Positions 41,198 to 62,930 of a stretch of 64,000 nt of DNA are shown here, piece by piece (position 1 is the first letter of the stretch; every line of letters starts with the position of its first letter). Location: assembly GCA_965644315.1 (NCBI GenBank), contig CBFFRQ010000094.1, positions 62,001 to 126,000 of the forward strand, written 5' to 3'. The notes under the pieces were generated by a model. It saw only the letters and a program-made list of their open reading frames with translations, was not told the origin of the DNA and did not search any database. Source of the stretch: Caecitellus pseudoparvulus. Lineage: Eukaryota > Protista > Bigyra: Bicosoecida. The translations under genes were made by a program, and so were the position numbers.

Positions 41198-44100
41198 TCA
41201 AGTCTCGCCCCCACCCTCATGCACGGATGTGCGCTGTGGACGTGCAGCCGTGAAGGACACGCGACCTCGGCCGTCCATGCGGCGGCCCCCTGACATGCGC
41301 CTGTTCCCATTGCGAGCAAATGCCAGCGCAAGCGCTTCGCATGGATCCCCTGAACCCTGTCCGGCATCTGCTTCAGGGGAGAACATCCCCCCCGTCGCAC
41401 TCGAACGCCGTTGGGCCGTGTTGGTGGCCGGGAGCTCTGGGGGCAGAGTCTGCAGCCTACGGCTTGGTGTGGCGCTTCCTTGTGGCTGAGCTGCCGGCGA
41501 GTCACGGGCACGGTTCGGTGACGTAAAATCACGAGTTGGCCTTCCAACTGGAAGCGGCTGCCGGCCTCGCCCAGTCGCCTGCAGCATCGGATTTGCTCCG
41601 TGCACTGTGTGGCTTGATGCTCCAGTGCTAGTCGATTGAAGAGGGTGCTGCTGGAACTCGACCTGGTCTGCCAACTTGCTGCCAAAGGCTGATCGTTTAA
41701 TCTCGGTGCCAGCTGGCATGGCAACCAGAGTCGACCCCGAGTCACCCACTACATCCGCCATGCCAGTCTCCACGGTCCGTCCCTGCTCCTGCAGCATGCC
41801 CAGCACACTCAACACATCAGATGCTGGACGAGACGCTGCGGGTTGTACATCGCCTCGCCGCACACACCGCTGCACCAACGCCCACATAATGCTGCCCACA
41901 CCCGGCACTTGGCTGTCGGCCACATCGCCCAGCTGACCACTGCTGCCACTTCCTGCACTGGCTGGCCCCAGCTCAGGCAGCCAGGCTCGCAGACGCCGAC
42001 CCACACGTGCCAGCAGTGCTCGCACTCGGCCACTGTACCCTCGAGCCACAGCCATCGCCAGCCACAGCAGCACAAGCACATGCCCGATGCCGGAGATGAT
42101 GGATGCAGCAGTGGCCAGTCCGCCACCTGCCGTGCCCACACCCACACACACCACCTGCACCAGGATGCCGCCATGGTCCAGGACATCCAGGTCGCTCAGC
42201 TCAGCCAGCGCCCACGGCCGACGGTGCTGCACGAGGGCCATGCTGCCCGCCACAACCACACCGACACACACAAGGCGAGCCATGATGGATGTCGTCATGC
42301 TGCCCATGACCGCCACCAGCACGACGAGGGCCATCTGCAAGGCAGGGAAGGCGTGTGTGGGCAGGAGGCGCCCGGCACCGCAACAGGCATGCTCACTGGC
42401 GCGTGCTTCCGCGACAGCAGCTGCTTTGAGCGCCTTGTCTGCACTTGTAGCATGTGCAAGGCGCACTGCTTGCTGTGGCGTGTACTGCATGCGGTACCCC
42501 ATCGTGCAGTAGGCAGGAATGGAAGCCCCCCGCGGCAGCAAGTGTTCCGACTCCCGCCACTGCCGCCACGCCAGCACACTCAGCACACCCACCGTGGCAG
42601 CCAAGCACTGCAGCGTCAAGGAGGCAGCGTACCCGCCCACATCAGCCGCATGCCCAGCGACATCGTCCGGACTGGACATGCCACGCCACACTGGCTGCAG
42701 CCCCACGATGCGGGCTTGGCCCTGGATGACACTGGGCACCACCTGCATGTACGCCGCTGGCGCCAGGAGCAGGAGGATGGTGGTCCAGGTCTTGTCAGGT
42801 GCAGGGCGAGCGCACCACAGCACAGCGGCACTGACACACAGAAGCACGGCGCCATACACGGCCATGATGATGTTGGTCATGTCATGAGGGCTGCGGCTGT
42901 CGCCTCCGCCCGTGAGACATCCTGCGCTTGGCATTGTCGCGACGTCAGCCCGCCCTGTGAGTGCGCCCAGGATGCCCAGGACATCCACGCCTTGGGCTGG
43001 CTCAGGCTGGCTGGCGTACATGGTGCCGTTGGGCAGCATGGCCTGATCTTGGCCTGCTCGCCAGGGCTGGGCCATGCCACAGACATCGGCCCAGTGGCCC
43101 AGAGTGTGCGCTGTCGCCTGCAGTGTGCCTGGCGTGTCGGCAGCCAGTAGCGCCACCTGCCCCGCCATACCGATGTACCACATGGCCAGGCGCAGGCCGC
43201 CACTGAACAGGCTCGTCGCAACACGGTCTGGAGCACGCGCATACCCGTGCACCGCGAACAGGGACATGGCCAGTCCCAGCGCTATCTGAGCGGCTGTGGC
43301 GCCAGCCTTGACGACATCTGGCGCCACGCCACCGTAGGGACACTGGCGGCATGTGGTGCAGGGGGAGGTAGCAGCCCAGCCGTCGGCACAGGCTTGGCAA
43401 GCGAGGCCGCGGTGTCCAGGCTGGCAGGCTGACAGGAGGCGCACGTCAGAGTGGGGGAGGCAAGAGCCTGGTCGCGGACAGGGGAGGATGAGGGCTTGTG
43501 GTGACGAGCAGTGTTCAGTACATGCGAGCTGGGCTGAGAAGCGGAGAGCAATCTGAAGGTGGGATGAGAAGTTGTGTGATGAAAGTGCCCAAGCCGAGCG
43601 GGGTGGAGAGGGTTGGGGTGTGAGGGATGGGCTTGGAGATGCCGAGGCAGTGGGCATGGCTGAGCTGGAGTGGGAAGGCGTGGTGCGTGGACTGGCACTG
43701 CTGCTACTGGTGCTGCTGACGCTGGGAGTGACAGAAGGGGGGTTGGTTGCTGTGGCGGACCGAGTGGGGCTGATCGTGCAGGTGCCGGATGGAGATCTGC
43801 TGGGAGTTGCCGTTGGGGATGGGGAATTCGTGGCAGTTGGCGTTGGCGTCGGCAGTGGCTCTCTTTGGCCCGGAGCGCATCCAACATCCACGGCGGCCGG
43901 GCAATCGCCACCTGTGCAGTTCCATGCACCATACAACGTGCTGCCCACACAAGAGCCCACGCCAGTGCATGAGATGCTGCAATGTTCTAGTGGAATGGAA
44001 GTGCGTATGCAGTAAATGCTTGTGCTTGTGCAGGAGTCACTCCCTGTGCAATCAACTGAAGCACCGTCCTGAAGGATGATTGAGTTTTGAACAGTGTCAG

Positions 44101-46315
44101 ACGAGCAGCTATGTGGTGCATCGCAGTGGAGAGTTGTGTTGGGAAGGGGGGATGCTGTGGGGCAACCATTGCACATGCACAGATTGCTCTCGAACTCAAA
44201 GCCAAACATTTGCATGAAGCAATCGATGGATGAAGGAGAAGGAGGTGGGCACGCACTCGTGAGTGGAGATCCAGCAGTGTTTAGGGAATTTAAGCGAGGG
44301 AGACCATCAAATATCCCCACAGGCAGACTGGTCAGAGCATCATTCCTGCTTAGGGACAACGTGGTAAGGCTGGAGAGGTTGCGAAACAAGCCGACAGGCA
44401 GCCTCGCCAGTGCAGGGTTCCAGCTCAGGTACAGGTGTGTGAGGCTGCTGAGGCCATCAAATATTCCCACAGGCAGACTGGTCAGAGCATCATTCCTGCT
44501 TAGGGACAATGTGGTAAGGCTGGAGAGGTTGCGAAACAAGCCGACAGGCAGCCTCGCCAGTGCAGGGTTCCAGCTCAGGTACAGGTGTGTGAGGCTGCTG
44601 AGGCCATCAAATATTCCCACAGGCAGACTGGTCAGAGCATCATTGCTGCTTAGGGACAATGTGGTAAGGCTGGAGAGGTTGCGAAACAAGCCGACAGGCA
44701 GCCTCGCCAGTGCAGGGTTCCAGCTCAGGTACAGGTGTGTGAGGCTGCTGAGGCCATCAAATATTCCCACAGACAGACTAGTCAGAGCATCGTTGTAGAT
44801 CAAATCCAGATGTGTGAGACTTGTGAGCCCATCAAACACACCAAGCGGCAGGCTTGTTAGTGCACCTGACCCATACTCTGATCCCCCAACGGCCAGGCTC
44901 GTGAGATTGGCGAGGCCGACAAACACCCCTGGCTGCAGCGTCAACAGTCCACTATTGCTGGTCAGCTCCAAGTTCAAGAGGCTGTGAAGGTTGCCAAACA
45001 CGCCCACAGACAGACTGTTCAGAGCTCTATTGCTGTTTAGCTTCAGGTGTGTTAGACTGGGCAGGTCATCAAAAACACCCACAGGCAGGCTGGTCAGGGC
45101 AGAGTTGTAGCTCAGATCCAGGTGTGTGAGGCTGGACAGACCATCAAAAACACCCACAGGCAGGCTGGTCAAGGCATAGTTGTAGCTCAGATCCAGGTGT
45201 GTGAGGCTGGACAGACCATCAAAAACACCCACAGGCAGGCTGGTCAAGGCATAGTTGTAGCTCAGATCCAGGTGTGTGAGGCTGCTGAGGTTACGAAAAA
45301 CACCGACAGGCAAGCTGTCTAGGCCGTGGCCGTCCAAGCTCAGGTGTATGAGGCTGCTGAGGCTGTCAAACACGCCTTCAGGCAGGCTGGTCAACACGTT
45401 GCGAAAAAAGTTCAAGTGTGTGAGGCTGGTGAGGCTGTCAAACACACCCTCAGGCAGGCTAGCTAGGGCATAGTTCCGTCTGAGGTCCAGGTGTGTGAGG
45501 CTGGTAAGATTAGCAAACACACCTACAGGCAAGCTGCTTAAGGCATCGTTGTCGCTCAGGTAAAGGCTGCCCAGGTTGCCGAGGCTGTCGAAAACGCCTG
45601 GCCGAAGGCTGGTCAGTCCCCCATATCCATTCTCACGCCCCCCCAGTCTCAGCCTTGTAAGGTTCTTCAGCGTATCAAATACACCGTCAGGCAGGCTTTC
45701 AAGGGCATCATTGAGGCTCAGATCCAGATCTTCAAGGCTGACCAGTTGGTTGAACACTCCTGGTCGCAAGCTGGACAATCCGTTTATTTCAACGATGCCC
45801 AAGCTCGTGAGGCCGGTCAAGCTGTTGAACACGCCTTCAGGCAGGCTTGGCAAGGGAGTTTCGCTAAGGGACAGGCTGGAGAGACAGGTGAGTCCATCAA
45901 AAACACTCTCATTGATGTTCGTGAAGCTGCCGAAGTAAATGTTCAATGCTGTGCACCCGCATGCAGTACAGCTTTCCAGTGTGTCACCCTCCACAACACA
46001 GCATGAAGGCAAGTAGCCCACCACTCCAGCCCAAAGGCTCACCACGCTCATCAACCACAAGAAGCTTCTCCGCCCTGCCTTTGTCTCAGTCCTCCTCCTC
46101 TTTGACCCTTGCACCCCTAAATCAGGCGTAATCTTGTTCACCTGACCACTCATTCGAAGACCAAACCCGCTGTTGTAGATGGACAACCAAGACCCTCCTG
46201 GCATGAGACTCAGCATCATACACGAATGGGCGCTTGCCATGCCTCTACCACGGCATAGATCTGGTAGTCTTTGCTGGTGTGGGTGCGCTTGCTCTGCAAG
46301 CTGTACTTGGGACAA
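41198..46315 (-). CDS. LRR receptor-like multi-pass membrane protein (~22 LRRs, Cys-rich region, Ser/Thr/Pro stalk, multi-TM domain); true start probably downstream of 46315
   Basis: Mostly 25-aa repeats LTSLPVGVFDGLSSLTHLDLSYNYA, a hydrophobic leader (FLWLMSVVSLWAGVVG), a PTPTPTATNSPSP stalk, CQPGHRGLACQACADGW, then several hydrophobic helices. Single 1705-aa ORF. Confidence 0.88.
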   Translation of the reverse strand: MSQVQLAEQAHPHQQRLPDLCRGRGMASAHSCMMLSLMPGGSWLSIYNSGFGLRMSGQVNKITPDLGVQGSKRRRTETKAGRRSFLWLMSVVSLWAGVVGYLPSCCVVEGDTLESCTACGCTALNIYFGSFTNINESVFDGLTCLSSLSLSETPLPSLPEGVFNSLTGLTSLGIVEINGLSSLRPGVFNQLVSLEDLDLSLNDALESLPDGVFDTLKNLTRLRLGGRENGYGGLTSLRPGVFDSLGNLGSLYLSDNDALSSLPVGVFANLTSLTHLDLRRNYALASLPEGVFDSLTSLTHLNFFRNVLTSLPEGVFDSLSSLIHLSLDGHGLDSLPVGVFRNLSSLTHLDLSYNYALTSLPVGVFDGLSSLTHLDLSYNYALTSLPVGVFDGLSSLTHLDLSYNSALTSLPVGVFDDLPSLTHLKLNSNRALNSLSVGVFGNLHSLLNLELTSNSGLLTLQPGVFVGLANLTSLAVGGSEYGSGALTSLPLGVFDGLTSLTHLDLIYNDALTSLSVGIFDGLSSLTHLYLSWNPALARLPVGLFRNLSSLTTLSLSSNDALTSLPVGIFDGLSSLTHLYLSWNPALARLPVGLFRNLSSLTTLSLSRNDALTSLPVGIFDGLSSLTHLYLSWNPALARLPVGLFRNLSSLTTLSLSRNDALTSLPVGIFDGLPRLNSLNTAGSPLTSACPPPSPSSIDCFMQMFGFEFESNLCMCNGCPTASPLPNTTLHCDAPHSCSSDTVQNSIILQDGASVDCTGSDSCTSTSIYCIRTSIPLEHCSISCTGVGSCVGSTLYGAWNCTGGDCPAAVDVGCAPGQREPLPTPTPTATNSPSPTATPSRSPSGTCTISPTRSATATNPPSVTPSVSSTSSSSASPRTTPSHSSSAMPTASASPSPSLTPQPSPPRSAWALSSHNFSSHLQIALRFSAQLACTEHCSSPQALILPCPRPGSCLPHSDVRLLSACQPGHRGLACQACADGWAATSPCTTCRQCPYGGVAPDVVKAGATAAQIALGLAMSLFAVHGYARAPDRVATSLFSGGLRLAMWYIGMAGQVALLAADTPGTLQATAHTLGHWADVCGMAQPWRAGQDQAMLPNGTMYASQPEPAQGVDVLGILGALTGRADVATMPSAGCLTGGGDSRSPHDMTNIIMAVYGAVLLCVSAAVLWCARPAPDKTWTTILLLLAPAAYMQVVPSVIQGQARIVGLQPVWRGMSSPDDVAGHAADVGGYAASLTLQCLAATVGVLSVLAWRQWRESEHLLPRGASIPAYCTMGYRMQYTPQQAVRLAHATSADKALKAAAVAEARASEHACCGAGRLLPTHAFPALQMALVVLVAVMGSMTTSIMARLVCVGVVVAGSMALVQHRRPWALAELSDLDVLDHGGILVQVVCVGVGTAGGGLATAASIISGIGHVLVLLWLAMAVARGYSGRVRALLARVGRRLRAWLPELGPASAGSGSSGQLGDVADSQVPGVGSIMWALVQRCVRRGDVQPAASRPASDVLSVLGMLQEQGRTVETGMADVVGDSGSTLVAMPAGTEIKRSAFGSKLADQVEFQQHPLQSTSTGASSHTVHGANPMLQATGRGRQPLPVGRPTRDFTSPNRARDSPAAQPQGSATPSRRLQTLPPELPATNTAQRRSSATGGMFSPEADAGQGSGDPCEALALAFARNGNRRMSGGRRMDGRGRVSFTAARPQRTSVHEGGGET
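44304..44790. repeat. 150-bp tandem repeat (two-LRR module) x ~3.2 inside the LRR gene
   Basis: CCATCAAATAT... units begin at 44304, 44454, 44604 and 44754 and differ by only a few bases. Confidence 0.95.
45067..45283. repeat. 75-bp tandem repeat (single-LRR module) x ~2.9 inside the LRR gene
   Basis: CATCAAAAACACCCACAGGCAGG... units at 45067, 45142 and 45217. Confidence 0.95.
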
Positions 46316-46747: not shown

Positions 46748-47130
46748 ATGAAGTTGCTTCTCCACTCCGCCCTGTGCTCGGCCGTTGCCGCTGGTTTGCC
46801 CGGTGCTGTAGGTTGACGTGATGCGATATGCTCCGTCTTGCTGTGCTCCAGATGGCTATTGCTCGGTGCACGCACAGCGTCAAGCTTCGACACTAGTATC
46901 CGCATCGTTCACATACAACGCAGTTCAGGCCTACCCCCTTCCTTTCCGTGCCACGCTCCTGAACGAATGCCAGCACCGCTTCGCTGACGATGCTGCGTTC
47001 AGCTTCAAGTCACCCCTCTCCCGGCAACGCTGGAACTGCCTTTGACTGGCAAGGTGCTGTAGCACAGCTCTTACAGAGGCTCTACAGCCACCTACCTTCT
47101 CAAACTGCACTAAACTCAGACTTTTTACCG
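46748..47130 (+). pseudogene. Possible decayed 5' fragment of an LRR-receptor paralogue
   Basis: Signal-like MKLLLHSALCSAVAAGLPGAVG, then in another frame YAPSCCAPDG (the neighbour has AGVVGYLPSCCVVEG) and ALTEALQPPTFSNCTKLRLF. Broken by stops and frameshifts. Confidence 0.3.
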
Positions 47131-47919
47131 CAAAGTCTTAGCTGGATGCTGACTTGCGGGGATTGGTGTACGTACGTGTTCGTAGTGGCTCCTTGAAATG
47201 CAACGTCCCACAGGTGGATGGTGTCAGCGCAGGTGCAGTGACACAGGGCCAGCCTAGCGTGACTACACAGGCTTCCCAGAGCTTGATTTTTGCTCTGTTA
47301 CATTCAGAGTGAAAGTTGAATTTGTTTGGGTCGACATTATGCCTGAAACCTCAACAGGGCCTGCGGGAGAGGTGCAACTCCATCTGGGCAGAGTTTCATG
47401 AAACTCCACAGAGCTTCGGGGCTCTATCTTCGGCTTCTTCAAGCAAGCACCAACAGGACATTGTGTGGGGGCTCGATCAGTATGCATGCAACACTGCCTG
47501 CGTAGTCTGCGTGGGTGAAAGGCCCTGTGCATTGCGGAATCCGTGTCGGCGACTTCTTGGTGCGGGCTGGCGTCTCCTGCCTCCCGCCGACCCGGATTGC
47601 CGCCCATCCTTGCGCAAGCCCTGGTGATTTGCATGCTAAGGTCAAACCCGAAGACCTATAGCAGGTCCAGCATAGGCTGTTGCGTCTCCACAGCTTCTCC
47701 GCTGACCTCGTGGACGTCCAGCTCGACCTGGCTTCTTGACTCCTGTTCCCATCCGGAAGTCTTGTGCGATGCTTCCTCCCTTTACCAACCCTGGGGGCCA
47801 TGGCTCCTCAGCAAGAAAGTAGATGCCAAGTAGAACCGCTCTGACTGTCACAGCCCTGCTGCTGTGGGCCTGCAGTGCTCCCTGAAGCTCGCCCGCAGGG
47901 CACCCAGCTCCTTCTACTC

Positions 47920-50900
47920 TCAGGTCTTCCTGCGTTTTCCTCTGGAAATAATGCGGTACTCGCTCTTGCGGGTCAAAAAGGTTGACTTGGATATGAGCAA
48001 GTCTGCTCGGTCTTCCTCGATGTCGCCTGTCAGGTGTTGGGGATTCACTGGCTCGCACTTCGTGACCAGCTCAAGCAGCTCGCCGCCGTCCAGCTTCATG
48101 TACTCCGCTTCAATTACCTTGGACCCTTCCTGGAACCTCCCACATACAGTTTTCCCATCACGTGGGTCGTAGAAGTACGCCCGCGTGTGCGCACGGGTGT
48201 TGACCATGAGGTACCACTGCGGCTGCTCCATCAGGCTGAGCACATCCCCATCCTGCACTTCACTGCCGTCATCCTCGTCATCCTCTGCAACAAAAGCTGC
48301 CCCAGGCCTTGCCAGACTTGCAGCCGATCTTTCCCGCTGTCTCTTTGTCCCGCCCAGCCTTTTCTCCAACCTCTTTGGCACCTGCACAGACTTGGCAGGC
48401 ACTCTGTCGTGGCTGTCGCCATCCTCAAATGTGATGGAGTACGTGCCGTCGGCTCGCACCTGTGACACACGCCCGGGGTACCAGCCATCGGGCCCATTCG
48501 TCCACCCCCAGTCCATGGACTCTCCGTCCTCCCCTTGGCCGGGTGGGATGAATGCCCGTGCGAAGACTGAGTCCCCCTCTTGGAACTTGGGCTGGAACGG
48601 GACTGGTGGGTGGACAACTGACCTCTCCCTCGTTGCATGGATGTATCGCATGGCCTTGGGAATATCTTGCAGACCCCTCTCTCTCCAAAGCCTGCCAAGG
48701 TCCCCAACCATGAGCGTCACCGCCTCAGTCCATTCGGCCTTGGGCACGTGTGCAAGGCGGCTGTGGTCCACTTGGTCTCTGACTGGTCCAAGACGGCCAT
48801 CAGGGAAGCACTGAGCAAGCTGTGGCTGCGACTCATTCCCCAGTACAACGTACACGCAGTCCCAGCCCTGCGCATCAAATGCCCGGACGATGTCTCCTCG
48901 AATGGTTGTGACGGAGGCCGCCGCTGAGGGCTGGCCGAGACCTGCAAGGACATCCGGGCGCCAAAAGGCACCTGCACGCCGCTCCGCATCCTCTGAGAAG
49001 GCGCTCCATAATACCAGGCTTATCATCTGTGCCAGACAGTCCCCGCTCTCAGCCTCTCGCAGGCTGCGCAAGAGTGCCCAGTGCTTCGTTGCCGCCTTCG
49101 CAAGGCGCTGGACTGCCAGAGGAAGGAAGTCATCCACAAGCAGGAACACTGGCTTGGGGGGCAGTCTCACCACTCTGTCCATTATGAAGCCCTTGGAGTC
49201 TACGATGATGGTGTGTTCAGGATTGTCCCCGAGCCAAACGCGGAAGACTTGTTTCGTGGACACGGCATCCGCTCCCTCTCGAGCCACGTACAGCGTGTCC
49301 AGTCCGATCGCATCAAGACTGCCTTCAGCCGGCCTGGATGCAACTGGTGCGCGTGTTGAAAACTTCCTCACCATGTTCTTGCTTGTAACCGACGATGGTT
49401 TCGTTTGTTGCGTCCGGCGATTGGGGTGCTTGCAGAGAGCTGGCTGTGCGCTCGAAGTGTCAGAGGGCTTCAGTCTGCGTGCGTGTGCTGGGTCCACATG
49501 GGAACCCTTACCAGGCGAAGTTCGCAATGACTTCTTTCGTCGAAGTTTTCTGGCCACGTGCCCTGAAAAGTTCCCAGAGTTTGCAACGTACTTCTCCCTG
49601 CTCCGAGCCCCCTTGGCGGCGGCGTCCAGCACTGGAGCCCAGCAGATCTCTGGGTCACACTCCGTTGCAGCCCGCTTAGCAAGCCTGACTGCTGAACTTG
49701 GAATGGCTGAACCGAGCCGTTCCATCTTCAGTGCCAGGGCTGCCAGCTCCTTTGCAATCGCCTTGGCCTCTGGTGCGCTCGCCTCCCTGGCGCCTTCAGT
49801 CGTTGAGGGAGACTCTGTGACTGGCGAGGCAGCACCCTCCGGATTCTGGGCGCAACCAGGGCTCATCTGAGACCCATCAACTGGATTCGAGTCCGTCTCA
49901 GTGACGCTCAGCTCTTTCCCTCCAAATGTTTCTGATATCTTGCCTGCGACATCACAGCGCAGGATCTCCTGAGCGTAGTGGCGTGCTGCCCAGCCGTGCT
50001 TGCACGAAGCTGTGGATCCGTGGGCAGAGCAGTCGCAGATTGGGCCACATGTTCGGGGGTTAGCCAACGAGACGAGGTAGATGTTATTGGTCTGTGACTC
50101 GCTGTGGATCTCGAAGGTCAGCGTCTTGCAGTCTTGCAGGTTGATACGTTCCTCCAAGACACCCTCCTTCTTCCACCTCAGGAACATCTCGAGCCCTTTC
50201 TTTTTTGACTCTCTCGCCATTCGTTGTACGGAACTCCGGCCACCTGTCCTGTACGTCCGGGCCACTTCACGACACTGGATGTACGACACTAAACAGCCTC
50301 CCTTGTCTGGCTCTGGCCCTCCTACAAGCGCAACGAGCATCTCATAGGTTGAATGGTTGTAGCGCCGCTTCAAGACCCGGTACTTGAGCATGTTCCACAT
50401 TGACTCAACATAGTTTGTTGTGTTGTCCATGGAGCGGTCATTGCGAAACCAAAGTGCCCATGTTGGCAGCCACGCGTCACACAGCCAGTTCGCCTCCAAG
50501 TACTCCAGAGCTTTGCGGTACTTAGGATCAGCGCACACGTCCTGCTTCATGACTTGCCAGTGGCGGTGGAGCTCTTGAGGCGACGTTGCCGTGAACAGAG
50601 TGCGGGCTGCATCCGTGAAGGTGGTTTTGCTCTCTTGGTCTGGAAGGGTCATGGTGACGCTCTCGTTCACAGCCTTCAGAGCGTGGAAGTGACAGAGGAA
50701 CAGCTTGCTATGCAGCATGCGTTCCAGCATCCGCACTTCTGGAATGTGTCTGAAGGCGCTGAGTTCATGGGTATGCTCGCGAAGCGCCTGGATGGTTTCG
50801 TGCACAGGCAGCCACTTCGCCTTGCTAGCATCCTCCACCGCGCCAAAGTCGCCCAGCTGCCGCTGGGCCGCCTGGGCAGAGATCTGCAGCGAGCGGGACA

Positions 50901-52790
50901 CGTTGGGATCCTTCCCCACTTTATCCAGCAGCCTCTTCATCTTGGTCCCCACGTGCCATGCGAAGGCGGAGTGGCCATGTGGGCACTTGTCCATCATCTT
51001 GGCGGTGAGGTGAAACGCACCACCCAGCTCGGTCTCCATCTTCTGGTACGACCACACGAGAGCTTGGGCTAGGGCCCCAGGCACTGGGTTTTTCCCTGCA
51101 TGGAAGTACATGAACGCAACTGGGATGCCATGTGAGGTGTGGGGTGACCTGTACAGCCACGTGAAGAGCTTTGACTTGAACTTGTCGGTGCCTCCCGTGT
51201 CATCCTCGTACACCAGGGAGTTCATGGACTCCTTGTACTCGCTTGTAGCTGCATACTTCCTCATTTGCGGTGTGATTATGAGCAAGACACTGAAGTCCTC
51301 CGCTTGGTTGAGCTTGTTGAGGTGGAAGTAGGTGTTGGTCGTGTCTGCCGCCGCCATGTCCACACACGCCTGAAAGACGGACATCCCCCCGCGCTGCTCT
51401 CGCTTCATTTTGTCCAAATATCCCTGGATTGCGGCAGGGGAGGGGTGAATGTTGAACAGTCCATGCTTGCATCTGAGACCAGCGTCCTGCATGAGCTGGG
51501 ACGTGGCTGTGTGCTTGTCTTTGAGCATCTGGTCGTGCTCCATGTATACCTCAGGGGTTGAGCACTGTGTCTTGGCTAGGAGATAGGTAAGGATGTCAAG
51601 CATGGATGCGCCAGGCGTGCTTGCTGCCCTTTTCTGTATGATTTCCTTCACCACGGGGCATAGGGGCAGGGACATGTACTCCGCACGACCGACCTGCTTG
51701 GTCGGGTCAACGGGTTCATCGATTGCGAAGTACTTTGCAGGGGTGTGGTTATGGTGCATGCAAACCTCCAGAGTGTATCCCTTCTGACTTAGGGTCACCC
51801 GTATCCTGAAGGGGCACTGCTGGCAAAGTCTCTGTGGTGAAGCCAGAGCAGCGTCACGCTGTTGCGGATCGTGAACAGGGCTGCTTGGTTCTGGACTGCA
51901 ATCCGAACCTGCAGAGTCAGGGCTTGTGTGTGTGCATGCAAATGTCAACATGACTTGCCCCTGCTTCCCGCGCCACGGCTTGTTCTCCAGCTTGATGAGG
52001 CATCCAAACTCCCTCGCCGCTTGTGAGAGCGCTGGGCCACATTCTTCGAGCGGGCCAAATCGAATGCGCTGCCCGAGTGACCGTCGATGGACAAGCAAGG
52101 CATGCAGAGGACTGCTTGCCCCCTTTGGCGTTGGCAGGATGCTGGAGACTATGGTGTCTGTCCTGGGAGTCTTGTCCACACGGGATAGTCGGACCTGGAT
52201 GATGGTGGCCTGAGCAGTCGCATGCGCTAGAGTCACTTGACTATGGTGCCGGTGCTCCTTCAAGATGAGCGCCCCTTGATGAGACGCGGCCCGCACGGCG
52301 CGCTCGACATCCACGGGCGCCACCCCAGCATGTCTGGTTGCTGCCAGCACATCTCGCAAGCGGGTCAAGGCTTCCCTGTTCTCCAAACCGCAGTGCTTAT
52401 CTACTTCGTTGGGGAGCTTGCCGATGCTTGCCATGCTAAACACATTGCCGAGAGTCAGCTCAAGGTCTGGGTTGAGCTGCAGGCACGAGCGGATGGCTTC
52501 AATCACGCGTGCAAAGTCCAGCAGCACAGGCGCGGGAGTCTCCACATGGGAGCAAGGGCTACTGGTCATGCCGCCCTCTGAGCTGGTGCTTGTGGCGTCG
52601 CTGTCAAAGAGAGCAATCGGACTCAGGCCGAAGTCTAGATAAGCAGCCAGCCCAGCCCACGCATCCCTGTCTGGCCTTCCCTTGTGAAGCTCCGCCCAGC
52701 TTTTGGCCAAGCTGAAGGCAAGGAGGTCACTTGCTTGTGCACCATCTTCCTCCATGCCAGCCCTGACCCTTGAAGCTTCGGACTTGTTGA
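47920..52790 (-). CDS. MULE transposase portion: FAR1/WRKY-like Zn finger, DDE domain, SWIM finger, Tudor/Agenet-like domain
   Basis: FACTH...CPFRIRV...MHHNH (~51945-51745). EDDTGGT..LFT...GIPVAF, MMDK, LCHFH, YLEANW..W and TTNYVESMWNMLK (~51210-50385). SWIM YLVSL...CDC...CKH (~50080-49995). Tudor FQEGDSVFAR...WYPGRVSQVRADGTYSITFEDGD (~48585-48385). Confidence 0.9.
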
Positions 52791-54044
52791 AAAAGCGTAC
52801 ATGTGTCCAGATACGTCCACTGCACACTTGCCTGCAAGCTCGGCAAGGCTTTCCAGGTCTCCTGGGAAGTCATGGACAATGACGCGATCGTACGCGTGAA
52901 GCGGCATGTCCAACGCCACAAACGTTGGGCTCACGCTCACGCAGAGACCTTGTTGTGTTTGGGGCGACCCATCAGAGCTTTGGAGTTCAAGGGCTTCCGT
53001 GTCACTTCGCGCCAGAGCTTTGCGGACACGCCTGTCCAGCGCGTTTGTCGTGGCTTCGTCTCGGCACACAACAAGCACCCTTTCGAAGCTCTGGAACTGA
53101 GCTAACAACTCAAGAACTTCATCAAAAGGGTGATGCTTCGTTGCTGCTGCAGCAGACCTTGGGCGAGCTCCGCTGCTGTCCCCGGCCAGTGGCTCTTGGA
53201 TCACATGCAGCTGCACTGCAGTCCGGACACTGCGCCTGGCAATGGCAGTGTGCTCCGGGGCAAGGTGCAGGTACGAAAGGATGTGGGGCACGATGTCAGG
53301 TGCAGCTACGGTGCTCGTGGCGAGGACAGGGAGGCTTGCTGCTTGGGCAGCCTGGCTCAGCTGCCTCAGGGGGTCACAGTCGACTTGCGTGAGTGGCAAA
53401 TGACCCGCAGGCAGGTTCATGACGAGTGCCACAAGCATTCTATGTTCGCGTGTCGACGAAGTTGTCAACAAGAACTGCATCGCCTGTGGGATGGACACAA
53501 CTATCACGGCCCCTTGCGTCAAGCTTGGATGGAGTGCGGCATCGCTGGGAACCATGTCACCAGCCGACGCACAGGTGGCGACGCAGTCCCCGAACGAAGG
53601 CACTTGTCCGACTGCAAGCTTGCGCGCCACCTCACAGTCGCAATCAACTTCATCGGAGGGCAAGATGCACGCTGCTATTCCACTTCTAAGCAGGCGCGAC
53701 ACCTTTGCGCTATGCCGGGATGGACAAGGGCTCGCCAGGAGGACAACCCCCTGCAAAATGCCAGCCAGCAAGCCGAAAATATCCGCTTGCTCGTTATCCA
53801 GGGGCGAAATAACAAGCGAGTGCTTCCCTGCACGGGTGCTTTGAAGTACTTGGGCGTGGTGAGGCTGTGGGCTTGCTCGGCCCCCCAGCACCGCCTCGAT
53901 CGCTGCCGGTTGCCTTCCACCAGCGCCTTCAAAGGCAGCAACTGAGCTTGGGTCAGAAAGGTAGGGCTTCTGGAAGTCTAGAGCCTTGACGAGCACCGCT
54001 GTGTGTGCTCCGGTCGCGGGCTCCACCACTTGTTGGGGAGTGGC
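52791..54044 (-). CDS. Catalytically inactive RecQ-like SF2 helicase domain; N-terminal part of the transposase gene, separated by a 1-bp frameshift
   Basis: Collinear RecQ landmarks: AGKHSLVISP, GVVLLASP...LRSGIAACIL, LPVLATSTVAAPDIVPHILSYLHL, RVLVVCRD and RVIVHDFPGDLESLAELAGK. Walker A and DEAH are lost. Confidence 0.7.
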
Positions 54045-55158
54045 CTATGCCTCTGTGCCTCCGCCTGCCCCCGTGGCTGGACTGGGCGCTGCATAGCTCT
54101 CAAACTGCCGTGTCTCGATTACAGTTTCCTCTCTAGCCCCTGGAAGCTCAATATCCGCGTCGTCTGAATCCTCAGCTGTGGCTGCCTGCAGCCTGGACGA
54201 CTTGCGAGCACCACGTGCTTGGCCCGCTGCTCCTCCGGCCAAGGATGCACAGTGTCTCGGCTCCACAGCCCTGAGGCTGCTGTGGCCCTCGCTCAAGAGT
54301 GTGAGCACTTCGACTCCAAGGAGTTTGACAACTTCCTGTGTGACTTGAGCCTTTGTCCAGCCCACAGGATTACGTGAGGACTCCTGTGCTCTGCGATGGA
54401 CTGCGCTTGCGCCTGCAGCGACGAAGCTCTGGATGTACTCCTCCTTGATAGCCCATGGGTGCCTTCCTGTCAGTCTCTGTTGTACCGCCTGCAAATAGAG
54501 CAAGCAAAGTGTGGGGGCGAGTGCTTAGGAGCCGAAGATAGCGACCTACCCTTCTCGCGAGGTAGCTAGCGCCCCTGCCGTTCTTGTAGAAGCCGCCATC
54601 CTGTGCCAAGGCGAAGATTATCGAGTCCCAGGTATCTGTAGGAAGTAGGTATGTTCCCCCGCTTGACATGAGGTGCACTGTGTCGTAGCTTGCGTCCTCG
54701 GGAGTGTCATTTGTGACCTGCAGCGCATCCTCCCGGGCCAGAGTCAGGATGGACGACGCCACAGAGGCAATCTGGGCCTTTACGACACCATCACCGAGGG
54801 CATGAGAGCCCCACTGAACTTTGCAGTCCTTGATCCTGTTCCATGCTTGCGATAAATCAACTGTGGCAGGCAAATTGCCTCTGGATGAGATTCTCTGCAA
54901 CTTCAAACCAGGCCTCTTCATGGAATTGAGCATGATCTGGGCGAGGCGACGAGAAGCCAAAGCGCCAAGGGACACTGAACATGATTTCATGCCTGCAACA
55001 CGCTTGACGTATGTGTGGGTGGTGCCTTTCTGACCAACGGAAGCCATTTTAGGTGAAGGGTATCCGAAACGCCTGTGTAACGCCAGGGGGGAAATGCATA
55101 TGGGCCCGTGTCTCACGATGCCTGCAAGCCTCGAAAGAATGAACTCGTTCAGAGGCAA
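54045..55158 (-). CDS. Upstream exons of the same transposase gene (function unknown)
   Basis: A phase-0 61-bp intron 54549-54489 (GTAGGT...TTTGCAG) joins ORF 55158 to ORF 54503 in frame. The latter is in frame with the RecQ-like ORF across one TAG (54047-54045). Confidence 0.55.
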
Positions 55159-55899
55159 CTAGAACACTTGGAGAATATGTTGCGGTGCATTCGGGGTGTC
55201 AATTTTGCACACGAGAGACTCTATCGGCTAATGCTGGCTACCTCAGCGTCAAAGTAGATCACAGTGTCGTCCCCCTACTGAGCGGTTCTGGAAACACGTT
55301 CACACGTTCTGCCCCTACACTTCACTCCAAACTCACGGATCACCCAACTCAGCCACATTTTGTGCTTAACCAGCTTGTGCGATCCTTCTGAGCTCAATCT
55401 ACATCCCTCTCCCAGTAAGTGTTGCGAATGCAGCGCACACTCTTTTGGCGTGGTGGCTCGGCATTGCCGAGCAGCGCGCTGCATCGACTCACGGCGCACG
55501 CGATGGAAGTAAAGGCTTTCCCGGGGCCCTCTCGTTGCCACACTTGCTATGCTTGTCTCACACGACCCTTTTATTGCCAAGCGGGCGTGTGGCAGTGAAG
55601 TATGCACGTTGGCTTGTGGTGTCAGCTGCAACATGTGCGAGGTCAGCTCTGCGACGCGCCGCAGAACCCGTTGGGCACCACCGGGGATTGTAGGCACCCC
55701 AACGGAGACTGTGGGCAAAGGGTGTCGCATTTTACGTGTACTGCGGTGTGTTATATGTTCGAGTGGCGCTTGTGCTCGGGTGGAAAGGAATGATAGTGCT
55801 CGTGGTTGACGTTGAAACTCTTCTTGCTGGCACACCACCTCGCGAACCGGTACCTCCTGCGTGCTTGTCCATTAAACAATAAGTCCTCTCCACCTGGGA

Positions 55900-57146
55900 T
55901 GCTTGAGCCCTTGCTCGCAGAGAGAATGGAAGCCTTTGCTTCCGATGCAGCAATCTGCTGCCACCACGCACTTCCAAGGAAGAAGGTTCGAAAACTCCAA
56001 CTGGCCCTTCGTGACTTCCATGATTTCATATGTGGCGACGGCAAAGATGGCGGCAAAAGTGGGAAAAGCGGGAAAGGCGTCAAAGGAGGGAAAGGCGTCA
56101 AAGGCGTCAAAGGCGTCAAAGGCGTCAAAGGTGGGAAAGGCGTCAAAGGCGTCAAAGGCGTGAAAGGTGGGAAAGGCGTGAAAGGTGGGAAAGGCGTGAA
56201 AGGAGTGAAAGCCGTGAAAGGCGTGAAAGGCGGGAAGCGCAAGGAAGCCGGGAAGCGCGGGAAAGGCGGCTCTGCTTACGTTGGCAGTGAGGACAGCAGT
56301 GAGGATAGCAGTGAGGATAGCAGCGAGCACAGCAGTAAGGATAGCAGTGAGGATAGCAGTGAGGATAGCAGTGAGGATAGCAGCGAGGACAGCAACGAGG
56401 ATAGCAGCAAGGACAGCAGTGAGGACTCCAAACGCAAGGATGGCACTGCCACGCCAAGCGAAGGCAAAGCTCTGGGGGGCACTGCCACGCCTGGCGAAGG
56501 CAAGGTTGAAGGAGGCACTTCCACGCCTGGCGAAGGCAAAGCTGTCGGCTCTAGCACCATCGATAAGACGCGTTGGCGCATTCAGTCTCGACAACGACTG
56601 GGGAAAGCGTTGAGAAAGAAGCACCTTTTGAAGAAGGATACGCTGTTCACCCATCAGTACGAGAATGTTCGGAGCGCCTTCAACAGACTGATTGGGGTAA
56701 AAGAAGAAAACACAAAAGAAATTGACAGTTTGCGGAAACATGTTGAGGCCTTATCCCTGAACTTATACCACTGGTACGAGGTCGTCGCTCCTGGAACAGC
56801 CATTGAGTGGCTTTGCGGGAAGACGCACACCTCACGTGTTCACACTGAAGTTCGGAAAATCATCAGCAACAAAGCGGACGATGACAACAAGTCTGAGCGA
56901 CGCATCTGGGTTGCTGCCGACAAGGTTGCGCAGCTTCTGGATGAGTCCATACACGCGAACTCCTTCAAAAGGAGGGTTTGCGTTGTAGTCATCCAGCTTA
57001 TCATCCTGCTCGGCCTGGTTTTTGCCGTCGTGGACCTCTCCGGTGCTGCAATTTTTGGATCAAGCGAAACAGTTGTGAGCGGGCAAATCGAGAGCACTGT
57101 CCAGCTGCGAGGGTCACAAAGTCCCAACGCGACAGCCCTTGCGTAG
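55900..57146 (+). CDS. Hypothetical protein: (G-X-K)n collagen-like basic tract, (SSED)n acidic tract, helical region, C-terminal TM helix
   Basis: 446-aa open frame from 55806 with first ATG at 55900; TM segment VCVVVIQLIILLGLVFAVV. Confidence 0.65.
56060..56545. repeat. Coding micro/minisatellites: 9-bp AAAGGCGT(C/G), 12-bp AGTGAGGATAGC, 33-bp GGCACTGCCACGCCTGGCGAAGGCAAA...
   Basis: Directly visible arrays at about 56075-56230, 56285-56425 and 56442-56545. Confidence 0.95.
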
Positions 57147-62149: not shown

Positions 62150-62930
62150 TTTCAAGTGTGCTGGCAGCGCTGGGTACCAGACCAAATCCGAACAAGAGAA
62201 GTACGCCCAGCCACAAAAGCGCGCACGTGTTCCAGAGGCAGCATTCCCTCTCGGTATTCCAGCCTAGAGGCAGGAAAGGACACCTCTCCAACCGCACATA
62301 TCCAGTGTAGCTGCTCCTGCCATAACTCGAATCTCCACCACCTCCCCACGACACAAGAATATCACTTGGAAAGGGGGTTGGAATCACCACTGCCACGCGA
62401 TTGATGCGCGGTGGGGTTCGGGATGTCCTGGCAATCTCACGCTGCAGCGACACCCATGCCAGCTTCGACATGCCGATCATCTCAATGCGCGCCGTGCTCC
62501 CCACTCGCACGCCTACCAATGTCCCACAGCATGTGCATCATCGCCTCGGCACCTTCGGCCATGGGCACCGGGGCGAGCGGGGTGCGGTCCACGTGGCCCC
62601 TGATTGGGCCAAGGCGGCCATCAGGGAAGTAGCGAAGCCAGCATTGTTTGTGAATCTCATCTCAATACGACATACACGCAGCCCCAGACCTCCGCATCAA
62701 GCGCGCGAAGGACACTCCCTATGATACACCCAATCGCGCACACTGCAACACCCACCCGAAGCCCACTTGCCTTCAAACACAGGCATGCCCCTCCACGACT
62801 CTCAACAACGCGCGCAGGAATCCCAGGACACATCCCAATGCAAGACCACACGCCGCTGGTCCACAACCCTTCCCGCTCACCAACGCACTGCGTTTCTTAT
62901 TCAATGCCTGACTCGTCATGTGCCTGCCAG
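62150..62930 (-). pseudogene. Decayed relic of the C-terminal region of a related MULE transposase
   Basis: Translates with stops and frameshifts as VLRALDAEVWGCVYVVLR*DSQ..YFPDGRLGPIRGHVDRTPLAPVPMAEGAEAMMHMLWDIGR. The intact gene has IVRAFDAQGWDCVYVVLGNESQ..CFPDGRLGPVRDQVDHSRLAHVPKAEWTEAVTLMVGDLGR. Confidence 0.85.

Follow-up and report, generated by a model that had tools for sequence, protein, structure and literature searches.

RecQ-type helicases are known from several eukaryotic transposons. They have been described in KolobokH, Kolobok-1_CCri, and AcademH (PMC9587614 and PMC10799480). In a red-algal Kolobok element, the RecQ helicase is encoded on the other strand, and the helicase of KolobokH is found downstream of its transposase (PMC9587614). 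AcademH is a helicase-encoding element with 9-10-bp duplications (PMC10045372 and PMC10799480). A different combination is found in the bicosoecid Caecitellus pseudoparvulus, in a stretch of 64,000 nucleotides referred to here as the window (G000:C94:62001-126000, from a 30.6-Mb assembly of 215 contigs with 55-72% G+C). The minus-strand segment 47023-55270 of this window very probably represents a class II transposon of the Mutator/IS256 superfamily, 8.25 kb long and present in few copies, with one two-exon gene; the copy found here is dead. The encoded protein begins with an N-terminal part without a known domain, followed by a RecQ-derived module, a linker, and a WRKY/FAR1 finger. Next come the DDE RNase-H-like core, which contains a C(2)H motif, and a SWIM finger, and behind these lie a conserved basic region, a Tudor-like domain, and a C-terminal tail. 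The N-terminal fusion of a RecQ helicase to a Mutator-type transposase appears to be a new pairing, in contrast to the association of RecQ with Kolobok and Academ. No published fusion of RecQ or another helicase to a Mutator or Mutator-like element (MULE) transposase was found in the literature searched, which was incomplete and did not extend to Repbase. The original prediction for this locus, which spoke of an unrecognized architecture, agrees with this literature, where RecQ appears only with Kolobok and Academ.

The same fusion is found in seven to eight distant relatives on eukaryote-type metagenome contigs, where the helicase is intact. When 1.84 billion representative proteins were searched exhaustively with HMMER, only ten matches were returned, namely, two fragments (P0001 and P0002), seven proteins, and one further fragment. 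The seven proteins comprise 1309 to 2117 amino acids (aa) and are 28-33% identical to the protein of the window family; the shortest, P0009 (1309 aa), is truncated and clusters with the full-length P0015 (1839 aa). The full-length relatives (1839-2117 aa) have the same domain order within one open reading frame (ORF). Their contigs hold eukaryotic genes such as POPLD and SAC3_GANP, and one of these proteins has been named "superfamily II DNA helicase RecQ" by IMG. Together with introns, these neighboring genes also mark the host of the window family as a eukaryote. Word-indexed protein searches, whether with the full protein, its DDE piece, or the family profile, found no relatives, nor did scans of viral contigs and of bacterial and archaeal genomes, and a metagenome scan yielded only three loci. 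A search for inverted repeats around the gene of one relative found none. P0001 and P0002 (MED5165549.1 and MED5165410.1), with identities of 97% and 90%, respectively, are filed under a "Cyanobacteriota bacterium" metagenome-assembled genome on contigs of about 1.2 kb; these are probably eukaryotic contigs that were wrongly binned.

The assignment of the transposase to the Mutator/IS256 group is well supported. The DDE core (50380..51222, minus strand) contains the sequences YEDDTGG and KMMDKCxHG, the C(2)H motif LCHFHALKA, and the glutamate motif TTNxVES. In the joint alignment with the relatives, the invariant elements are YEDDTGG, KMMDKCxHG, LCxFHAxKA (the C(2)H motif), TTNxVE, and a CxCx8CxH finger, and the catalytic residues D1096/D1097, D1167, C1266-H1269, and E1362 are invariant as well. 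When the DDE profile of the family was compared with PDB sequences, it matched the "Mutator family transposase" ISCth4, an IS256-family transposase, with an E value of 0.0083 and an alignment across TTNxVES. ISCth4 was also the best Foldseek match in the PDB for an AlphaFold model of the WRKY-DDE-SWIM part (pLDDT 70), and the VIA exhaustive structure search gave it a Z score of 12.1 over 230 residues at 4.0 A, followed by the P element (9.2) and Hermes (8.9). Comparison with the ESM Atlas by features gave MULE+SWIM clusters at 0.96; by features and by shape, the nearest clusters were all MULE, ZSWIM RNase-H-like, FAR1, or SWIM (PF10551, PF03101, PF04434), and the Atlas neighbors with FAR1 align from residue 1.

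The two zinc fingers lie on either side of this core. The WRKY/FAR1-like finger (C...C...HxH; 51730..51999, minus strand), the presumed end-binding domain, forms a four-strand sheet in the model, and its C852, H913, and H915 are invariant in the alignment with the relatives. The SWIM finger CxCx8CxH (49996..50037, minus strand) has C1485, C1487, C1496, and H1498 invariant; the relatives show weak Pfam matches to SWIM, and ZSWIM8 matches the SWIM part of the model with a Z score of 6.1. The transposase family PF00872 is matched at the corresponding position in seven of the eight relatives below threshold, with E values from 2e-4 to 0.07 and at most 20.6 bits against a cutoff of 21. The Mutator-type DDE transposase with WRKY/FAR1 and SWIM fingers is backed by structure and profile searches, with Pfam remaining below threshold.

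The element is unlikely to belong to an already described helicase-carrying lineage, AcademH or KolobokH, and to owe its likeness to MULEs to the shared C/DxxH transposase group. The RecQ-type helicases of KolobokH, Kolobok-1_CCri, and AcademH would fit such a placement, as would the resemblance of the AcademH duplications to the length allowed by the G-runs that flank the copies (see below) and the failure of the core to reach the Pfam MULE threshold. Against these stand the best matches in both structure and sequence, which are to ISCth4 (its Z score being 3 units higher than those for the P element and hAT), and the nearest Atlas clusters with PF10551, PF03101, and PF04434. It is characteristic of MULEs that a WRKY/FAR1 finger precedes the core and a SWIM finger follows it. 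Furthermore, the helicase is located upstream here and downstream in KolobokH, and the TTAA target is absent.

The RecQ-derived module (52720..53987, minus strand; the frameshift discussed below lies inside its last part) is a two-lobed pseudo-helicase from which the ATPase motifs are absent. Its origin is best seen through the relatives. P0003 to P0009 and P0015 have N-terminal DEAD and Helicase_C domains that score above the Pfam gathering thresholds, and they keep motifs 0 to VI and the RecQ-type DExH...W..FR.D loop. The profile of their helicase region matches RECQ5 (E value of 3e-34), bacterial RecQ (5e-28), BLM (4e-26), RECQ1 (1e-22), and WRN (2e-18), with the first non-RecQ match, AncD1D2, at about 1e-15, followed by DDX1 at 1e-13. 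An hhalign comparison of the window family with this profile gives a probability of 97.6% and an E value of 2.9e-12 over 362 columns. In a Foldseek search with a model of the module (pLDDT 58, pTM 0.51), the best 50 PDB matches all belong to the RecQ family (WRN, BLM, RECQL5, RECQ1, and RecQ), with E values from 3e-14 to 6e-11; a search with the single sequence reached E. coli RecQ only at an E value of 0.91. These results show that the module descends from a RecQ helicase and is homologous to the intact helicase found at the same place in the relatives. Together with the motif comparison, they bear out the originally proposed N-terminal RecQ fold devoid of catalytic motifs; the RecQ-like ORF was not an independent gene in the other copies, nor was the architecture found in the literature searched.

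In the family of this genome, motifs I, II (with the RecQ aromatic loop), III, and VI are lost. Motif I, PTGxGKTG in the relatives, reads SPLDNDQA in the window family; the DExH box of motif II and the loop that follows it are covered by an 11-residue deletion; motif III (SAT) has become TST; and motif VI (QMxGRxxR) has become ELAAKC--A. On this comparison, the module is predicted to lack the usual means of ATP binding and hydrolysis. A conserved L..YF..G.S stretch is found after motif VI. Pfam searches of the window family found no RQC, HRDC, or zinc-binding domain, and those of the relatives found no RQC or zinc-binding domain either. The module is the most diverged part of the protein, with 18% identity to the relatives versus 33% among the relatives; the corresponding values for the DDE part are 27% and 37%. 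For substitutions common to at least two copies, the ratio of nonsynonymous to synonymous rates (omega) is 0.29 in the helicase-like part (38 synonymous and 32 nonsynonymous, p 2e-7) and 0.29 in the DDE part, estimates that take no account of transition bias or of the copies' mosaic history. The ratios indicate purifying selection on the module as strong as that on the catalytic core, not free decay, and the whole frame is under purifying selection.

Seven copies of the 8,248-bp element are present in the 30.6-Mb genome, with nucleotide identities of 93-95%. The six other near-full copies are located on contigs C54, C38, C31 (two copies, C31a and C31b), C33, and C30. The original prediction, which covered positions 47920-55158, captured a real finding but not its full extent: the similarity limits against the other six copies place the element at 47023..55270 on the minus strand, from 5' ACGACACTGTG... 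to ...CCAGCGTTGCC 3'. These edges fall at identical nucleotides in every copy (55270 and 47023 in the window), the other copies measuring 8,247-8,248 bp, and the left flanks are different in all copies. A search of the genome for short or nonautonomous derivatives that share the ends of the element found none; the ends are present at seven places only.

Lesions are found in six of the seven copies. The window copy has one stop and one frameshift, C54 has a stop in exon 1, C31a has two stops, C33 has one stop, C31b has one frameshift, and C30 has several lesions and a GC splice donor. Only C38, in which both exons are open, is free of them. A 4.4-kb element of a different kind (L032:3735-8143; G000:C38 about 150734-155142) has inserted into the 3' end of C38, 25 nucleotides (nt) before the tip; it has perfect inverted ends, TAGGTCTCGTGAAACC ... 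GGTTTCACGAGACCTA, a TCTCA duplication, and ORFs of 363 and 635 aa. The copies are mosaics: in their alignment (window 54440-54600 and 54760-54870), blocks of linked differences change partners along the element, among them a divergent one that covers the end of exon 1 and extends into the intron, a pattern that points to recombination or gene conversion between subfamilies.

The ends carry only 6-9 bp of imperfect subterminal inverted sequence. The subterminal motifs, A(C/T)GAC(A/G)CTG at the 5' end and CAG(T/C)GTT(T/G)CC at the 3' end, are partly complementary; they covary in some copies and are mixed in others, and the mixed ends would fit recombination between subfamilies. Outside the termini lie runs of G. 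A G5 run (55271..55275, minus strand) abuts the 5' end of the window copy on the sense strand and may be either a target-site duplication or a terminal G-tract, and the G-rich stretch GGGAGAGGGGT (47012..47022, minus strand) abuts the 3' end, also on the sense strand; its homologous counterpart in both C30 and C31b reads GGsGsAG(G)nT. A run of at least five G residues lies within 12 nt outside the terminus at 11 of the 13 readable copy ends, always on the sense strand, compared with a background of 1.4%. Such same-strand runs on both sides look like a duplicated G-rich target. C31a is flanked by TGGGGGGGG on both sides and C31b by AGGGGGGGT and AGGGGGGGGT, and the flanks match imperfectly in the remaining copies. 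The 3' G-tract looks partly conserved in the type to which the window copy, C30, and C31b belong.

Runs of G or C exceed the expectation from composition in the window (43 G8 matches versus 5 expected) and in the contigs of the relatives (17-25 G7 matches versus 1.5 expected). Three copies and the start of contig C104 adjoin one and the same repeat on the 3' (right) side. This repeat, of at least 3 kb, is found at L031:3893-9001 (G000:C54:340892 onward), G000:C38:155174, C104:35, and C33:50017, with parts at C23 and C212; it is 95-97% identical between places and encodes, on the opposite strand, an ORF of 1070 aa that is unmatched in Pfam. The repeat may act as a favored target or be a partner element.

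It is distinctly unlikely that the seven copies represent a host gene family, that is, a domesticated transposase that is not mobile and was spread by segmental duplication. Purifying selection across the whole frame would be expected of such a family, which would also account for the same right-hand neighbor in three copies and for the failure to find long terminal inverted repeats and nonautonomous derivatives. Against it speak copies that all end at the same two nucleotides next to left flanks that are all different, and stops or frameshifts in five of the seven copies. The catalytic residues are invariant, and the G-run flanks on both sides resemble target duplications. A low-copy transposon fits these observations better.

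The gene of this transposon was originally predicted by joining four minus-strand ORFs into a single frame, and the four are present as listed: 47920-52827 (1635 aa), 52635-54029 (464 aa), 54045-54503 (152 aa), and 54370-55158 (262 aa). The intact frames of other copies and the seven distant relatives with the same domain order support one polyprotein in place of separate genes. C54 (L037:1413-7985, 2191 aa) and C38 (L038:1270-7854, 2194 aa) each have one frame across all three exon-2 ORFs. Exon 1 (54550..55047, minus strand) consists of a conserved ATG and 166 codons, is open in the window copy, and ends exactly at the GT of the intron, with an omega of 0.41-0.54. It contains no known domain: Pfam gave no match, and similarity to the N termini of the relatives or to their upstream ORF was not detected, exons 1 and 2 being searched separately rather than as a joined protein. 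The intron (54489..54549, minus strand), predicted from conservation, is 61 nt long, in phase 0, and reads GTAGGT...TTGCAG; it links the frames 54370-55158 and 54045-54503. Its canonical GT..AG sites, as first proposed, are kept in six of the seven copies, C30 having a GC donor, and its pairwise divergence of 0.21 per site is the highest among the parts measured. Exon 2 (47920..54488, minus strand) has 2189 codons in intact copies and ends with a TGA stop at 47922-47920. The protein of an intact copy therefore measures 166 + 2189 = 2355 aa, not the approximately 2390 aa proposed with the single frame, and conservation makes the ATG at 55047 a more likely start than the TTG at 55158.

Two lesions interrupt this gene in the window, and both are absent from all six other copies. 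The nonsense codon TAG (54045..54047, minus strand) is in frame with the next ORF, as the original prediction stated, and is GAG in the six other copies. The frameshift is a 1-bp deletion (52795..52796, minus strand) in the region where the frames 52635-54029 and 47920-52827 overlap, and it is the sole coding-region indel of the window copy relative to C54. Loss of a single base had been correctly recognized, but it had been placed inside the T5 run 52790-52794. In the alignment of all copies, the others read ACGTCTTTTTC and the window reads ACG-CTTTTTC, so the base was lost between 52796 and 52795, just 5' of the run; the repaired junction had accordingly been one residue off, with A where the other copies have V. 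The window copy is a pseudogene, its protein being blocked by the TAG at 54047-54045 and the deletion at 52796/52795, and it could move only with protein supplied by another copy. It could also be supposed that the helicase-like part sits beside the transposase by chance, as a gene of its own or as captured, Pack-MULE-like cargo. This view draws on the appearance of the part as a separate ORF in the window, bounded by the stop and the frameshift, and on a joined frame predicted from DNA sequence, but is highly improbable given the continuous frame in C54 and C38, the restriction of both lesions to the window copy, and the seven relatives with 28-33% identity, in which a single ORF holds the parts in this order.

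The C-terminal part of the polyprotein contains a Tudor-like domain (48370..48567, minus strand) that is particular to the family of this genome. The last 240 residues match Tudor_5 (E value of 0.003), Tudor_3 (0.0047), and Agenet (0.065), all below the gathering thresholds, and the Tudor-like region shows a weak match to 2ldm (E value of 1.1) and a BLASTP match to the Tudor-like stretch of a host ORF (2e-10). These weak matches make the C-terminal Tudor domain proposed earlier a tentative assignment. Because this region lies beyond the end of the relatives' proteins, the family of this genome has gained the Tudor-like domain together with about 450 C-terminal residues. Two host ORFs of about 800 aa, L045:2634-5039 (G000:C3) and L046:155-2527 (G000:C101), have a Tudor-like stretch that is 42% identical to that of the element and matches PTM_DIR17_Tudor with an E value of 0.005; they are a possible source of the domain.

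Several observations weigh against the interpretation of the element as a Mutator-type transposon with a two-exon gene for a RecQ-derived fusion protein. Pfam searches of the window ORFs and of the intact copy left MULE (PF10551), PF00872, SWIM, DEAD, and Helicase_C all unmatched, and the assignment of the transposase to Mutator, as distinct from Academ and Kolobok, is drawn from structure and profile matches rather than from a superfamily tree. The helicase model has a low confidence (pLDDT 58), and its input alignment, which included the active relatives, may bias it toward the RecQ shape. A search for terminal inverted pairs in the element found no long terminal inverted repeats; these are typical of MULEs, although MULEs without them exist. 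A target-site duplication here would be a homopolymer and, as such, not cleanly readable. Finally, exon 1 and the intron are predictions from conservation alone.

A scheme can be proposed for the activity of an intact copy. The zinc finger would bind the short subterminal inverted motifs A[C/T]GAC[A/G]CTG ... CAG[T/C]GT, and the DDE core would catalyze cut-and-paste transposition, with G-rich DNA as the target and a duplication that is probably about 9-10 bp long. The dead helicase might serve as a DNA-binding or scaffolding part of the transpososome and not as a motor, and the Tudor-like domain might tether the protein to chromatin. According to the titles of PDB entries 6crm and 9i22, RecQ cores bind G-quadruplex DNA. 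It is conceivable, if doubtful, that the RecQ-MULE fusions form a distinct ancient lineage of the Mutator superfamily in marine microbial eukaryotes and that the pseudoenzyme of this genome reads G-rich or G-quadruplex-prone DNA, steering one-orientation insertion into the abundant poly-G tracts of the genome.

Other features of the window lie outside the element. A decayed fragment at 62512-62767 (minus strand) is what is left of a second, divergent member of the family; it has 42-56% protein identity to transposase residues about 1849-1933, the unnamed part that precedes the Tudor-like domain. The ORF at 55806-57146, considered as a companion gene, was rejected as a part of the element, since it is outside the similarity limit between copies. 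At 700 bp from the 3' end of the element, a 1705-aa ORF (41198-46315, minus strand) consists mostly of leucine-rich repeats (LRR_8, E value of 1e-95), with internal tandem copies that are 96-98% identical.

The combination of RecQ with a Mutator-type transposase represents a third independent pairing, beside those in Academ and Kolobok, and is a hint that a RecQ-type motor has been of repeated benefit to DDE transposition. A natural comparison is provided by the metagenome relatives, in which this architecture includes a live helicase, and by this genome, in which the helicase is dead but selected; the role of the helicase for the transposase is thereby open to experiment. The G-run flanks suggest a possible targeting rule. 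Standard domain scans miss the whole protein, so that such elements go unannotated, and fragments have already been filed under a bacterial metagenome-assembled genome.

Among the closest known systems are the relatives P0003 to P0008 and P0015, which share the domain order with the window family and are 26-30% identical to it over the WRKY-DDE-SWIM part. They differ in having an intact helicase, in being called as single ORFs, and in lacking the Tudor-like domain and the last ~450 aa. MULEs (MuDR; FAR1/FHY3-type) and IS256 (ISCth4) share with the window family the DDE core, the C(2)H motif, the TTNxVES-type glutamate motif, and the WRKY/FAR1-like and SWIM fingers that precede and follow the core, respectively; a duplication of about 9-10 bp, as the flanks would allow, fits Mutator. 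Unlike MULEs, which typically encode proteins of roughly 600-1000 aa, the window family has a protein of about 2,355 aa with an N-terminal RecQ-derived module and a C-terminal Tudor-like domain, has no long terminal inverted repeats, has G-runs at both ends, and is undetected by the Pfam MULE model. RecQ, RECQL5, BLM, WRN, and RECQ1 share with its module the two-lobed RecA-like core, whereas the Walker A lysine, the DExH box (removed by the 11-aa deletion), the SAT motif, and the motif VI arginines are lost in the window family. KolobokH and AcademH are likewise eukaryotic DDE transposons with a superfamily II RecQ-like helicase, but on present evidence their transposases belong to different superfamilies, and the helicase of KolobokH lies downstream of the transposase, whereas that of the window family is N-terminal, part of the same polypeptide, and catalytically dead.

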